NCBI GenBank assembly: GCA_011109175.1
Contig: RDEW01000069.1
Location: 1-38,704 of the forward strand
Direction of reading: 5' to 3'
Length of the DNA: 38,704 nt
Source of the DNA: Dicyema japonicum
Lineage: Eukaryota > Animalia > Dicyemida
Below the pieces are notes generated by a model. The model did not search any database. It was not told where the DNA came from and saw only the letters and a list, made by a program, of their open reading frames with translations. The position numbers and the translations under genes were made by a program. Below, piece after piece: positions 1,601-33,439 of the stretch; position 1 is the stretch's first letter, and each line of letters opens with the position of its first letter.

Positions 1601-1614
1601 AAATGGCCGGCACG

Positions 1615-1796
1615 AAAAATGATCATTTGCTCTCCCCCACTCCACTGGAGGGATTTCCACAACTGCAAGTATGGACGTCTTTTACCCTTTATGTTGATTC
1701 CGTGTGGACTCTTTCTGTAGAAATGTATACTGGATACACTTAGTTGGTTGTTTACATTAACTTCTTTCTCGGTGTATCCGGGGTTAATAATAATAT
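1615..1796 (+). mobile_element. Short non-autonomous retroelement fragment related to the GIT-ending LINE family
   Basis: The segment catttgctctc...gagggatttccac...tggacg resembles the LINE 5' leader (ccatttgctctc...gaggacttcccactggacg). The 3' part ggatacacttagttggtt...ttctttctcggtgt...cggggttaataataat matches the reverse complement of 38275-38340. Confidence 0.5.
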
Positions 1797-8990: not shown

Positions 8991-10489
8991 TTGGAATTTT
9001 TCACGTGCCCAAATGGGAGAAGGTTTGTGTTCAAATTTAAGAGCAAACTAAGAAATCAATAACAATTATTGTTTAATTATTATTTTAAATATTTAATTAA
9101 TTTAAAAAAAATAAATAAAAACTGAGTTTATTAAAGAAAGGTTTGTTGTTATTATAAGGTTTGATTATAGCCTACATGCATTGAGTACGCAATTGGAGTT
9201 ACTTCTCATGATCGCGAGCCCAATGTTCTGGAAGAGCCATCGCGTCATTATAGTTCACCTTTCCGATCAACCTGATAAACTCAGTAACCTAAATAGAGGG
9301 CTGTGGTCATTGGGAGATGACAGTGAATAATCAGGTTGAATAATTTAATCACTTCAAGTAATACATTTCTAAGGTAGAACTGACGTGAAAAAATATATTT
9401 AGTCCCATTTCTTTGAATGAACAAATTTAGATGTTGAAATTAAAATTCATAAATTATAGAAAGACAAGTCCCTTCTAGTATACAAGCCCATCCAGAACCA
9501 GAAAAAATGTCACATTTTTGGAGTTGGGTAACTCCTATATAAGGACAATAGAGACAAGGTTAGTTGGCGCATTATAATGCTAGTATTTGACGATAATATT
9601 CAATTTAAATAAAATTTATAATCATTAATTCCTACTGAGGTGCGATTCTTACACCTAATATCGTCTCTATTAATAATTTCCAGGATTAATCTAAACGATT
9701 TTTCTGTTTGATGAAGTGTGGTCATGGGCGCAGTGTAACGAGTGACGGGCAAAAGGCTTGATGGCTCCTAGTTCGGATCTCGCTGCTGTACATTCATCTA
9801 CGATGCTTTGGCTTGACTAGTGACGCCATCATTAATCAACATCTCACTGCGGAACCGGATCGTCTACAAGAGGACTCACACCCCAGAAAAAGAGAAGTGA
9901 AGAGCATTCCTTGGTTCTCCCTCATAGATTAGTTATGATAACTGCTCTTTACTTAAAATAAAGTGTGTGCCCCTTCTGGGAGGAGCTATAACTAATACGG
10001 CTCTTCGTAAAGTGCAGTGTCGATGAATTTAATCCATCAGTAAGGGATGTCGCCTATATCGACTCTATCCCCTACTAACATCATCGAAATCGCGGTGAAG
10101 GGGTCCTCAACTGCAGAAAAAGCGGAATCATTTCCGGAAATGACTTGCTCTATTGTTACGTCCCTTGAATAGTGTTGACCGCATGGAAACATGGATCACA
10201 TAAGCTAAGTGATCCAACAGAATAATACTTCGAGTCATGGAAATTCGTTGATGAAACGAAAATTCTAAGGATTACAGGAAGATCAAATTAACTGATAGAA
10301 AATCCCTTAGTGATGGAACCAGCACCGCCTTGCCTGCAAGTTATTTGGAGCTGTTCCCTTGATTTAGACCTAGCCCAACGCCAATCCAAGCGGACCACTG
10401 GGAACGTTTCTAGACGAAGATTCCTTTAAATTGGAGTTTCACTACGTCTTGGACTTAATTTTGCGTAGAACATCCGTGCCAGATCGACT

Positions 10490-15937: not shown

Positions 15938-16002
15938 CGGTTCTCTTCCATGCAGAACTTGCACTGAGCGCCACTACAACAACAGGTGAACCGCATGACG
16001 CC
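15938..16002 (-). ncRNA. HDV-like ribozyme remnant (retroelement 5' head), probably inactive
   Basis: GGCGTC-ATG-CGGTTC-ACC...AGT-GGCGCT...TGCA(agttc)TGCA...GAACCG. P1, P2 and P4 pair; no C is seen in J4/2. Confidence 0.55.
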
Positions 16003-16249
16003 ACGTTTTAATTCATCCAGATTTATTTATTAAGATGCCAGCATATGTGGTGAAATGAAAGTATTTTTGAAATCTATATTTTTCTATTAATAATTTTTAA
16101 TTAATTAAATTATTTAAAAGTTATTTTAATGATTTTCGAAACTGATGTAGGTAGAGACTAGTTGACATTTCTTTCTAGGTAGAGAAAAATATGTCAATTG
16201 TCTTGTTGGAACATTAAAGAATCCTCGAAAAATTTTAATTGATTGTATT

Positions 16250-18989: not shown

Positions 18990-19740
18990 TTATTAATAAA
19001 TGCCTTTCAGATTGAAGTTTCGGTTTATTGAAGTCACTTTGTATGGAATCTTCGTCACTTTGTACTTTCCTCTGCTTCCCAGCCCATGTGGAATCTATCA
19101 TATCAACCTGTGCAAAGAAGATAAATTTTGTAAAGGCCTTCCTTTGGAACTGTGGAGGAATTTATCCGCCAGGTATCGGGACCCTCTACAAGCAGTATGT
19201 CGAGCCAACAATAGGCTATGCATGTGCTGCATGGGGATCTAACCTGTCGGCAACGAACCTAACAAAAATTCAAGATATCCAGTCAAGAGCAAAAAAATTA
19301 CTAGAAAAATATACAGATAAAGAAATTGCCCCCAGAGCACTCGAGTCTATCATAGAGGCAACTGGAGGCAATTTCAGAAGAGGAAAGGAAAAAGACCCCC
19401 GTCCGTATAGAAAATGCGTGGGATCACAGTCGGAGCATCGAGAAAAAATGGCCCGATTATTGAGAGATGCCGGGATCACCTGAATATTAGTTATTGGTTA
19501 AGACGGTGTTTCTTTGGCTTAAATAATAATAATAATAATAATCATCGTAAAAAATTGTCGACTCATCAAAAAATTCGGATTATAAATTAATCCGAAATTA
19601 TTAATAAATGTCTTTCGGATTGCGGATAATGAAGTTTCGGTTTGTTGAAGCCTTATTTTTATGGAATATTAGTAAAAAATTGGCGACTCATCAAAAAATT
19701 CGGATTATTGAAGTTCGGATTAATGGGGGTTTACTGTATA
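18990..19740. mobile_element. Tigger/pogo-type MITE end with tandem subterminal units, interrupted by a LINE
   Basis: The reverse complement of the right end reads TA-CAGTAAACCCCCATTAATCCGAAC. The unit ttaataaatg.ctttc.gattg...gactcatcaaaaaattcggatta occurs twice, and the first copy is split by the LINE at 19056-19539. Confidence 0.6.
19056..19543 (+). mobile_element. Recent 5'-truncated copy of the 26000-29027 LINE
   Basis: Near-identical to the reverse complement of 26000-26480, with a (TAA)n tail and an imperfect 9 bp TSD (aatcttcgt / aatcatcgt). Confidence 0.95.
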
Positions 19741-25584: not shown

Positions 25585-25765
25585 AAATTGAATTTATTAA
25601 ACCAGAAAAGACAGTTATTACCAGAATAAAAAAATTCAGGTGATTTCAGCCTCCCTCAACGGTTTTCGCATGGTCTGACTTGAAGGAAGTGCCGTCCAGG
25701 AGGAAGTCCTCTGGATGGTTGTTGACTTACTGGAGCCACCATAGATGGTGAGCCACATGACGCAC
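25585..25765 (-). mobile_element. Bipartite non-autonomous element (LINE 5' ribozyme head joined to LINE 3' end)
   Basis: gtgcgtcatgtggctcacc...ggtggc and ccagaggacttcc..ctggacggca match 29027-28920, joined to LREAEIT* and a family-like 3' UTR. Confidence 0.8.
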
Positions 25766-25859
25766 GATAATAATTCAAGCTCCCTGGAACCAAAGAGAAG
25801 AGGATGAACAGAAGAAACAAACAAAAAATCTTCATATTATCACGTTCTCAATCCCCTTC

Positions 25860-25992: not shown

Positions 25993-28846
25993 TTTCCGGT
26001 ATTATTATTATTATTATTATTTAAGCCAAAGAAACACCGTCTTAACCAATAACTAATATTCAGGTGATCCCGGCATCTCTCAATAATCGGGCCATTTTTT
26101 CTCGATGCTCCGACCGTGATCCCACGCATTTTCTATACGGACGAGGGTCTTTTTCCTTTCCTCTTCTGAAATTGCCTCCAGTTGCCTCTATGATAGACTC
26201 GAGTGCTCTGGGGGCAATTTCTTTATCTGTATATTTTTCTAGTAATTTTTTTGCTCTTGACTGGATCTTTTGAATTTTTGTTAGGTTCGTTGCCGACAGG
26301 TTAGATCCCCATGCAGCACATGCATAGCCTATTGTTGGCTCGACATACTGCTTGTAGAGGGTCCCGATACCTGGCGGATAAATTCCTCCACAGTTCCAAA
26401 GGAAGGCATTTACAAAATTGATTTTCTTTGCACAGGTTGATATGATAGATTCCACATGGGCTAAGAAGCAGAGGAAAGTATCAAAAGTTACACCCAGTAT
26501 CTTCTGCGATTTCTTTTGTGGTATAGGTACTCCATTTAACGTGACATCAATTGTTTGCGTTCCCATCTTTCTATTCTTGGTAAATAGAATGACTGCTGAC
26601 TTTTCGGAACATGCATTTAATCGATTTTCGCACAACCATTCAAATATGTTATTTAGTATTCCTTGTAGTCTTTCTTTAGCATGTTCGACATTTACGTCCC
26701 TAGATGCGACAACTATGTCATCGGCATAAGAAAGTAGCATGTCATTATCATTCATAGGTACGGGAAGATCACTCGAAAACAAATTAAAAAGGGGTACACC
26801 ATTGGGTAATAATCCGATCTGGAACTCTTGTTTCCGACGGACACTTTCCCTCGGCGTCCACATACGAAATTTGCTAACCATAACTTTAATGGTGCATCAA
26901 TTTTTGTCAAAAATATTTTTCGTATGAGAATCTTCATTGGGACAGAGTCGAAAGCTTTTTGAATGTCGATCGTACATATGACCGATTTTTCCTGTTTTGG
27001 CTTGTTCTTGTGTCCTTCAGTTATGAACTTCATTAATGTTGTTAGGAAGGAGGTTGTTGATAATCCTTCCTTGAAGCCATGTTGGAATGTAGGTTGTGGG
27101 AGAGAAGGGCGAATAACTTTTAGGACCAGTTTCTCCAGGATCCTCGACAAACACATATAAGGGAAACTGGTCTGTAAGAGCCGGGATCGTTCTTCGGTCT
27201 TCCCGGCTTCAATATTGGTCGAATTTTTGATAGTTTCCATAAAGTCGGTATGGTATTTGTGTTCAGCGATGTGTTGTAGACGATTGTTAATGCATTTATT
27301 GATGCTGGGCCCAAGTGTTTCAGCAGAATAAGAGGAATTCCGTCTGGGCCACATGAGTTTGTTTTTTTCTGATTTGATATTGCTTTGGATACATCTTTAG
27401 TGAGAAAATAAATCAGCGGGGCAAATTTGGATGGCTTTCTCTTTATTTTGGTTTGTGTGTTAATCTTTTTATAAGGAATGTGACTGATTCGAATACAATG
27501 TTTTATATATTTATTCAGATTGAGCTGGCATTGTTCTTTGTTATCTTCGTATTCTGGGTTCTTCAGACGCCTCAACATCTTCCACATGTTGGAAATTGAG
27601 GTCTGATTATTCATGGCAGCAGAGATTCGAATGAGTTTCTTCCTTTGGGTGTTGTTTGTGCTTTTCGTGATAAGAATGTTTAGTGACCTGATTCGATTAA
27701 TAACCTCTCGTGAACGATGTATCATTCTCTTAAGGTTGTTTCTTTCCATAATTATTTTCTTTGTTTTTGAGTCGTATTTCAATTTTTCGTTTTTTATATA
27801 TGCTTTTCTGATAAAAATATTTCTCCCGTCAATGATTGTTTTGTTGAAATAGTATACAGCTTTGTCTATGGAGGAGAAATTTTCAGGTTGGAAATGTTGC
27901 AGTTTTGAATCAACGAAATTTGTAAAGCCAGTCCGATTTGCATTTTTGTAATCATAGAAATGAATAGGCTTCGGTACAAAGCGTGGCTCGCAGTTCAGCT
28001 TCATTAACATTGAATGGTGGTCGCTCCGGAGGTCATAACGGACCGTCCAATTAATGATCGGGGAAAGACGAGGTGAGCAGACGGATAAGTCCGGAGATGT
28101 CACCATGTCCTTCGTGTTGTATGGTGTCCTAGTGTTCTTTTTCGGGTTGTTGATGATTATTAAGTTTTGCATTTGGGATAATAGCAGGTTTCCTCTGTTA
28201 TCAGCGATTGGTAGCGGAACCAAGAAGGATGCTTCGCATTCAGGTCTCCACATAAAAGCAAGTTCTCCAGTTTGTCCAAGGTAGATAGGTCAAAGGAGAA
28301 ATTTTTCTTGCAGAAGACAGGAGGAGGAACATAAACATTCGCAATTTCAATTTTTCCAATGGAAGTTATAACAGAGATTCCAATTATCTCCGTGTTCGAG
28401 TCTTCCATTAANTTCGCATTAAGGTCTCCACATAAAAGCAAGTTCTCCAGTTTGTCCAAGGTAGATAAGTCAAAGAAGAAATTTTTCTTGCAGGAGCCAG
28501 GAGGAGGAACATAAACATTCGCAATTTCAATTTTTCCAATGGAAGTTATAACAGAGATTCCAATTATCTCCGTGTTCGAGTCTTCCATTAAGCTCTTGTA
28601 AAGAGAAGGGTTCTCGAGGTATTTTATTCCTTTTCTCACAAGAGTCAGTAGACCCCCTCCTTGGCCAGATGGGCGGTCGGATCTTACTGTGTTGTATCCG
28701 TTAAAGAGAGGAGTAGGAATGTTATTTGAAAGTTTCGTTTCCTGGAGAAGGCAGATGTCCACTCTGTTCCTCTCCAAGAATAAGGAAAGTTCGGCAATTT
28801 TTCCTCTGATCCCGTTTATGTTTAAGCTTTGGATTGTTAACTTCTT

Positions 28847-28900
28847 TGGGCCTGGGTTTTGTTCCACGTCTCCTGAGGTCAACAGTCTCAATCGATAGAA
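28847..28900 (-). other. 2A-like StopGo ribosomal-skipping peptide
   Basis: FYRLRLLTSGDVEQNPG/P matches the D(V/I)ExNPGP consensus with an upstream LL..GD, immediately before the APE domain. Confidence 0.9.
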
Positions 28901-28959
28901 TGTTCCAACAGTGAGAGAATGCCGTCCAGTGGGAAGTCCTCTGGTTGGTAGAGAGCAAA

Positions 28960-29027
28960 TGGTTCTTTTTAGATATAGTTTAAAACTATACCCGACGCCA
29001 CCAGAAACGGTGAACCACATGACGCAC
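28960..29027 (-). ncRNA. HDV-like self-cleaving ribozyme at the LINE 5' end (predicted)
   Basis: P1 (GT)GCGTC/GGCGT(C); J1/2 AUG; P2 TGGTTC/GAACCA; P3 ACC/GGT; GG after P1'; P4 GTATAGTT../..AACTATAT; J4/2 CTAAAAA with a candidate catalytic C at 28972. L3 (GTTTCT) and the base of P1 deviate from consensus. Confidence 0.7.
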
Positions 29028-29279
29028 ACAGTGTTTTCCTCATCCATGTCTTCGAGATCCCCCTGACATTAAACGAGAGTAGGTTGAAACCATCCCATTG
29101 AATCTTGTATTTTTCAGACTGCATTTAAAGAGCCACGTCACTAACTCAACCAATTTATGACGCACGCTAAAATTATAAACATAAATAAATTCATATTTAA
29201 TTAATTAAAAATCATTTTTAAGATAAATAATAGTAAAATGTTTTGTTTTAATATTTTAAATATATGTGGGTTGTTGTGA

Positions 29280-32388: not shown

Positions 32389-33439
32389 ATTTGATTTGTT
32401 ATAAACTTTCACTTTATTACAAACTCGTTGCAAAAGTAATAGTTTCACAACTATGTCTTTTTACATAATCATTATGCGACATTTATACTAATATTGTGGT
32501 TTAATGTGAAGTAGCACATAAAAATTCTTTAATTGTAGACAAATGCTTTCTCTAAGACTTGGGTTGAATAATGTTAGCATTTTTTGTTGAGATTATACAA
32601 AATATCAATCTTTCATAAAGCGATTAAACGTAATCCTTTCCCAAGAAGTGGTAAATACAATTAACGCAGGTATAAAATGTATACAATCCCTGATCATGGT
32701 CGGAACTGCTAATATATTTCAGATATATGAAAAATTGTTATGAAAAAGAATCAAATAAACCTGGTAATAATGTAAATCCAATATATCCCCAATTATTCTC
32801 AACAAGTTGTATGAACAGAAAATGAATAATGAGTTAACCGTAATATTTGTCCAAATATAAGCTTAATAGGATATGAATTCCATAATATTGATGTGGGGTG
32901 TTTTTATTTCGTGGACATGATGTATCGATGTCTCCGAGTCAGTCATTTGACCACAGTCAGATTGAAAAATGGATTACGTCCGTCACAGGAATATCAAGAT
33001 ATTTAGTTCTATAGAGCTACATCAGCTCGACCTCTTGATCTTTTAACCAAACTGGTGATATGGAATAATTCATTTTACGAAATGATTTCGTCTCCTCAGT
33101 TGAAAAATTACATCCTACATTTATCCATGACTTCATGGTTAGTTTTCTTCTAATAGACTATCCCGGTCCCAAGAGTTTCATGAAGTTTTATAATTAGTTG
33201 TTACTATGATCTGTGCATATGATCCTCCTGGTTACTTGGTCAAGGGTTTCTTGAATTTTCCTCAGTTCCTTCATTTCATTACGTTATTATCATCATGACA
33301 TGTGATTTACCTGCTTATAAGGCGCATAGTGCCAGAATTGCATCAAAAAGGTTAAATTACTCTTTTTTACCTCGGGGAATTTTTCGTACACTTTGATCTT
33401 AGCCAAAAGACCAAGAAGAGACCAAACCAAACCAAATTT

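Follow-up and report, generated by a model that had tools for sequence, protein, structure and literature searches.

The L1Tc/ingi elements of trypanosomes (Pr77/L1TcRz) are single-ORF APE-RT LINEs in which a 2A peptide lies directly before APE and whose 5' HDV-type fold also occurs in short non-autonomous derivatives (PMC3185411, PMC3383444, PMC4035085, PMC3708506); the combination of an HDV-like ribozyme and a 2A peptide in L1Tc/Ingi-type elements, from which the initial annotation of the locus described here set out, is thus known from the literature. The HDV-like ribozymes of R2 elements have the helix order and 5' position that we describe below, and their fold helps the template apart from cleavage (PMC3774820, PMC11331408); it was proposed that this benefit comes from the structure, without activity being necessarily required (PMC11331408). 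According to a citation of Ruminski 2011 in PMC13725137, such ribozymes have also been reported to promote translation. [quoted passage not shown] How translation of single-ORF LINEs starts, and what role a 2A near the start plays, are open questions (PMC3894237, PMC3708506).

We analyzed a stretch of 38,704 nt from Dicyema japonicum (contig RDEW01000069.1; hereafter, the window), which contains a LINE whose presumed start codon lies within an HDV-like pseudoknot and is in frame through a 2A-like peptide into APE-RT (Table 1). The reading we favor, with a probability of roughly 0.58, is that the head of this LINE is a translated, eroded knot that cuts rarely or not at all and is kept as a 5' structural module. 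Genome-wide counts refer to the 67,542,437 bases, in 377 pieces, of the D. japonicum assembly, described as 67.5 Mb in 377 scaffolds with 49% repeats (PMC6736024).

Table 1. Features of the LINE, its 5' head and related heads; coordinates are those of the window unless a locus is named.
Feature	Coordinates	Strand	Remark
LINE copy	~29172 to ~26000	-	single-ORF APE-RT, ~2.9 kb
True 5' tip of LINE copy	29157..29172	-	TTTTAGC and first copy of 9-bp duplication
Inserted repeat piece	29028..29156	.	129 bp, unrelated repeat, at least 40 copies
P1 5' strand	29021..29027	-	core 29025-29021; extendable past bulged T to 29027
AUG in J1/2	29018..29020	-	ATG read 29020-29018
P2 5' strand	29017-29012	-	3 pairs with two-sided changes
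P3 5' strand	29011-29009	-	invariant; common to canonical ribozymes of relatives
L3	29003..29008	-	6 nt, U-rich, without penultimate G
P3 3' strand	29002-29000	-	
P1 3' strand	28999-28995	-	
P4 hairpin	28972..28992	-	G28992 able to pair with C28972
J4/2	28971-28966	-	A-rich
P2 3' strand	28965-28960	-	
57-codon leader frame	28850..29020	-	stop-free, crosses fold
2A-like peptide	28847..28900	-	ends GDVEQNPG/P; motif as in PMC3708506
APE endonuclease	28160..28846	-	Pfam Exo_endo_phos; frame break after assembly N at 28412
Reverse transcriptase and short C-terminal part	26060..27354	-	broken frames
3' end and (TAA)n tail	26000..26110	-	copy ends near 26000
Second head, lineage C	15938..16007	-	T at C28972 slot; truncated before any 2A
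Third head	25585..25830	-	short non-coding derivative
Canonical-looking HDV-like ribozymes of distant relatives	L075:351-415, L197:1084-1154, L073:284-354, L198:213-283, L200:138-215		

By its architecture, the element would belong to the Ingi group as a Vingi-like LINE: one ORF encodes APE and then RT, with no ORF1, and Pfam at E 0.1 matched no RNase H in the ~150 aa after RT. The Pfam Exo_endo_phos match starts at residue 65 of the frame opened by the ATG at 29020. Within the APE region, positions 28320-28412 hold an N followed by a duplicated APE stretch, probably a gap-closing artifact of the assembly. No clear target-site duplication was found at the 3' end of the window copy. A 5'-truncated copy of the same LINE is present at 19064-19542 (+), comprising the 3' 480 bp with the tail. 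A full copy of 2.87 kb, 76% identical to the window LINE and with the identical order of head, leader, 2A, APE, RT and tail, was found at locus L071 of GCA_006345805.1, which we take to be an octopus assembly, L071 probably representing parasite DNA within that of its host.

The 17-nt head sequence occurs three times in the window, against 0.09 expected; the genome holds 514 occurrences, which fall into about ten lineages, while the control gave 0. Overall, the fold is carried by about 500 LINE-type heads and by a SINE of about 980 copies. The helices follow in the order P1, AUG, P2, P3, L3, P3', P1', P4, P2', that is, the HDV order claimed for this head in the initial annotation, and the pairing is backed across lineages: in P1, P2 and P3, 97% of the cells are paired, a fraction that drops to 33–56% in slid registers, and pairing together with covariation exceeded 500 of 500 shuffles as well as every slid register. 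Because related sequences can beat shuffles on their own, the weight of this comparison is carried by the slid-register control and by an independent test of P4, the arms of which differ in sequence among lineages and pair with their own partners in 46/50 cases, against 27.5 for permuted partners (0/20000). Two-sided, compensatory changes affect three pairs, all in P2, whereas base changes in P1 are confined to one side, and lineages A and B differ there in length by one base in a matched fashion; the covariation test suggested at the outset turned out positive for P2 and P4. In uninterrupted copies, the 5' strand of P1 allows one base beyond the equivalent of 29027. Minimum-energy folding of the head gave z values of 0 to -1.5 relative to shuffles, which is not significant; such a weak signal is expected for a pseudoknot, and the evidence is carried by the covariation. 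On these comparative grounds, the head is a real nested pseudoknot.

The SINE, ~270 bp in length, holds the best-paired version of the knot, fully Watson-Crick, together with a 41-nt pyrimidine-rich leader and an AUG-UGA; it ends in a (TAA)n tail and shows a duplication of 14 bp. It was seen on the minus strand of locus L003, with the head at ~1345. In the window, a 5'-truncated SINE copy lies at 1605-1795 (+); at 33292-33363 (+) and 33346-33422 (-), a fourth head, decayed and of SINE type (72% identity over 65 bp), and a U2 snRNA 5' fragment (Rfam E 0.02) abut each other. At two further loci, L055 and L058, an antisense SINE-like repeat of ~300 bp occupies the same head position between different flanks, with a duplication of ~14 bp; relatives of this repeat are found at 9810-10004 of the window. 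The third head of the window combines a pyrimidine-rich 5' leader and a LINE-like 3' end with deletions of P4 and P2'. The AUGs of the second and third heads (15996 and 25758) had been noted to open stop-free frames across the fold as well. They do open frames across the fold, but these run only to stops at codons 64 and 40, respectively, both without a 2A, and given that an open stretch of 20 codons has a chance of about 0.5, they provide no evidence of coding.

The frame of the complete LINE head is a different matter. The ATG at 29020 opens 57 codons without a stop that end in ...LLTSGDVEQNPG/P, the Pro codon occupying 28849-28847 on the minus strand, so the proposed path from the AUG through an open leader to NPG/P, directly before APE, was borne out. 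The sequence D(V/I)ExNPG/P follows a leucine-rich stretch in frame, a motif that by itself is insufficient for skipping (PMC3708506). Conservation of the frame, a second check suggested in the initial annotation, was evident from lineages with leaders of different length: the stretch from ATG to NPG spans 171 nt in both A and A2, 174 nt in B1 and 162 nt in C; L3 measures 6, 9 or 15 nt, differing by threes; and the phase from ATG to P2' is constant in A, A2, B, D and E. In lineage D (L016, L017), with a 15-nt loop, the AUG of the knot is in frame with APE although there is no 2A. The remaining two frames contain stops in A, A2, C and D, and shuffled sequences yield an open leader with a chance of 0.05 for A, 0.02 for B and 0.095 for C. 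The frame is one base off in lineages F and G, each a single copy, which make up 2/6 lineages with a readable 2A; lineage F has a visible 5-nt deletion. Sublineage B3 carries 2 additional nt in the spacer (13 copies vs 47). In family A, the leader is intact in only 16/30 copies, as expected of dead copies.

Comparison of family A with A2 (L071) gave synonymous/non-synonymous codon counts of 1/3 in the fold, 3/4 in the spacer, 5/2 in the 2A and 44/35 in APE. A fold rich in non-synonymous changes next to a 2A rich in synonymous ones is the pattern expected for a disposable peptide, albeit in small numbers. The idea of a structure-constrained leader discarded by the 2A stands insofar as the leader appears to be kept for its frame and not for its amino acids, whereas the skipping itself is a prediction. 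Judged from these patterns, the leader looks translated. The stretch was matched in no RNA sequencing run.

Whether the AUG in J1/2 is the main start has to be weighed separately. Its context is weak, and among 854 copies in the searched flanking context, 745 carry the ATG and no AUG-less family was found. The SINE also keeps the AUG, directly followed by UGA, and because the codon is retained in this non-coding element, its conservation alone is no proof of initiation. The AUG might then owe its conservation to a structural role or to an internal promoter that includes it, with the ORF translated by leaky, non-AUG or downstream initiation or from an IRES-like knot. Apart from the ~980 SINE copies, such an account would draw on the capacity of the AUG to join an extended P2 or, at the expense of P3, an alternative P1, on the second in-frame AUG of lineage B, on the Met located just before APE in lineage D, and on distant relatives in which the frame is open across the ribozyme and an in-frame AUG is found elsewhere (L075, L197 and L200). 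We nevertheless consider it distinctly unlikely, given that in A and A2 the J1/2 AUG is the only one before APE and that in four lineages differing in length the AUG is exactly in frame.

With respect to catalysis, the head departs from known enzymes in several respects. An Rfam scan of the window yielded no match to an HDV family, and none of the 56 heads of the D. japonicum genome passed a canonical HDV descriptor. The 6-nt loop of family A has no G in its 3' part and hence no counterpart of the active-site G (G25), a penultimate loop G being present among the lineages of this genome only in B and C; and the linker is 2 nt longer than in canonical relatives. C28972, previously taken for the catalytic C, does not qualify as an invariant unpaired base: this slot contains C in most lineages (8/10) and T in 34/34 copies of lineage C, and, C or T, it always lies opposite a G that continues P4. 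Known enzymes cleave much less or not at all when the loop G or C75 is missing (PMC13635239, PMC3774820), and C75U is inactive (PMC13635239). As to P1.1, between L3 and the bases after P1', the registers available are rich in wobble pairs or shift, and a Watson-Crick P1.1 at loop positions 2-3 combined with the loop G occurs in 0/56 heads. The flexibility of HDV-like cores counts against a non-cutting fold, and so does a C located 7 nt before P2', where the catalytic C is expected: it occurs in most lineages, as well as in 81 of the first 100 SINE copies listed. By its motifs, the catalytic core of the D. japonicum heads is eroded, which weakens the claim to being an HDV ribozyme and leaves the resemblance in place; self-cleavage is poorly supported, and the fold is probably non-cutting.

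The main competitor is an active, non-canonical HDV ribozyme that would cut at 29027 or right beside it, C28972 serving as the general acid; on the resulting uncapped RNA, the AUG would lie at about +8 to +9, and the 2A would discard the leader. Its HDV ancestry (see below), the C found at the slot in eight of the ten lineages, a drawable 7-bp P1 with one bulge, a U-rich L3 able to pair with the GG or AG after P1', and the penultimate loop G and linker cytosines retained in lineage B all speak for such an enzyme, but the short G-less loop of family A, the extended linker and the C/U variation opposite G at the slot, together with the upstream sequences discussed next, make it unlikely. A more elaborate version, in which a non-canonical core is both active and coding, competition between folding and ribosomes switches the RNA between template and mRNA, and the 2A frees the enzyme, strikes us as quite doubtful.

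Position 29027, proposed as the 5' end of the family, proved to be only the edge of the 129-bp insertion, which sits inside the head and shows a 9-bp duplication and a 5-bp microhomology. An in-frame ATG at 29047, considered as a start, was rejected as a chance ATG of the inserted repeat. The same head insertion, with near-identical flanks, is present at L062 / L032 (contig 323); this locus and that of the window are segmental duplicates or else haplotypes that the assembly left unmerged. The actual tip of the copy lies at 29170-29157; it agrees with the upstream consensus of family A (25/29 copies) and is backed by contig loose ends (four runs) and by L071. Upstream of the proposed cut, family A has TTAGC in ~85% of copies (24–26/29 per position), and sublineages B1, B2 and B3 each have their own 4-5-mer, which points to inheritance through RNA and argues against cleavage at P1. 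So does the best-paired knot, that of the SINE (S2), whose copies bring the upstream leader along: of about 980, 753 hold at least 17 nt upstream of the P1 core. The SINE's 5' end runs about 39 nt upstream of the cut, and the start of one copy, set by the 14-bp duplication, lies 41 nt upstream.

Element 5' ends therefore do not coincide with the first base of P1, with the possible complication of a target preference in family A. The target-site analysis covered the window, L071 and a few further loci. AGCGT follows only 2/162 tails, which indicates that those five bases are not a duplicated target and leaves a cut right after TTTAG uncovered; the six tails examined show no TTTAG duplication, and TTTAG is absent at both true 5'-truncated junctions that could be checked (n=2). 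The TTTAG before family A might reflect a target preference without duplication. It has also been considered that TTTAG, or a pyrimidine tract followed by AG, serves as a splice acceptor before P1, the capped 5' end being set by cis- or trans-splicing; a TAG immediately precedes the head in A, A2, B3, C2, D, F, S1 and S2, with a pyrimidine tract ahead of it in both SINE types, but its absence from B1, B2, C and G renders this explanation highly improbable. Taken together, genomic 5' ends upstream of the cut and a non-canonical core, two points on which the proposal in part falls to its own stated refutations, leave self-cleavage at 29027, with release of an uncapped RNA carrying the AUG at +8, unsupported, whereas the fold and the frame on which that proposal was built hold.

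The origin of the fold was approached through distant relatives. Searching with a profile built on the leader and APE retrieved many 2A-APE proteins, and we examined ten distant loci. Five of these (L073, L075, L197, L198 and L200), from metagenome and Logan contigs, possess a canonical HDV-like core 180–370 nt before the 2A end, with a 6-bp P1 (5 or 6 pairs formed), a 6-bp P2, the same or nearly the same P3, a 7-nt loop ending in CG-pyrimidine (CGY) and a CAAAY linker, whereas under the same motif no canonical core was found in L072, L074, L076, L199 and L201. L073 gave a weak, sub-threshold Rfam HDV match (E 0.21). The presence of canonical ribozymes at the same place in 5/10 relatives implies that the fold is, by descent, an HDV fold. 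The location of the start codon varies: in L075, the ORF starts with an ATG inside J4/2-P2'; L073 has an ATG in J1/2, like the window head but one base off frame; and in L197 and L200, an in-frame AUG lies downstream. In 5/5 relatives, no stop interrupts the 2A frame beyond the start of P1, with a combined chance in shuffled sequences of ~0.01, but the other frames are often open too, and this observation is only suggestive. As candidates for a ribozyme that is both translated and active, these five relatives surpass the window head. Searches with the 17-nt head yielded only chance matches in metagenomes, with the fold in 0/118 and one human-gut metagenome contig excluded, and none in viral contigs.

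From the fold, the frame, the 2A motif and the copy ends we infer the following route for the favored reading of a translated, rarely cutting knot. The RNA would start at least 5–10 nt upstream of P1, as the copy ends suggest, and fold into the nested pseudoknot, presumably inherited, to judge by the relatives, from an HDV-like ribozyme. Ribosomes would initiate at the J1/2 AUG, melt the knot and read the 57-codon leader, of which the frame but not the sequence would be kept, and StopGo at the 2A would release APE-RT beginning at Pro. In family A, cutting would be lost or rare, and the knot may protect the template, aid full-length copying or dampen translation, by analogy with R2 templates.

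If so, the Dicyema LINE offers a testable answer to the questions of how translation starts and what the 2A does: the 2A would shed a leader whose sequence is dictated by the RNA fold. The canonical ribozymes of distant relatives, the eroded coding lineages and the 980-copy SINE form a natural series that lets one ask what role an HDV fold plays once cutting is lost. Since 5' modules are important in gene-insertion tools built on Vingi and R2, the question is relevant there as well.

Compared with the described systems, the head is probably a translated, non-cutting variant of the known L1Tc/R2 device. L1TcRz resides in the 5' UTR, cuts at the element's +1 and has been shown to be active, whereas in the Dicyema LINE, of about 2.9 kb, the ORF begins within the fold, copies reach beyond P1 on its upstream side, and the loop and linker are eroded. 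The R2 ribozymes cleave and have retained the catalytic C along with four other invariant positions; moreover, R2 is RLE-type and rDNA-specific. The Dicyema family has a 2A, whereas none was detected in Vingi by the survey of animal 2A-bearing non-LTR elements, which mentions no ribozyme (PMC3708506). In our literature search, Ruminski 2011 lying outside its coverage, we met with no description of an animal Ingi-group element whose start codon is located within such a fold, and the overlap of ribozyme and start codon may already be partly known. The joint presence of a ribozyme and a 2A, the 2A of animal LINEs and ribozyme-linked initiation in retrotransposons are all known; what appears to be new is the start codon inside the fold, combined with an eroded core.
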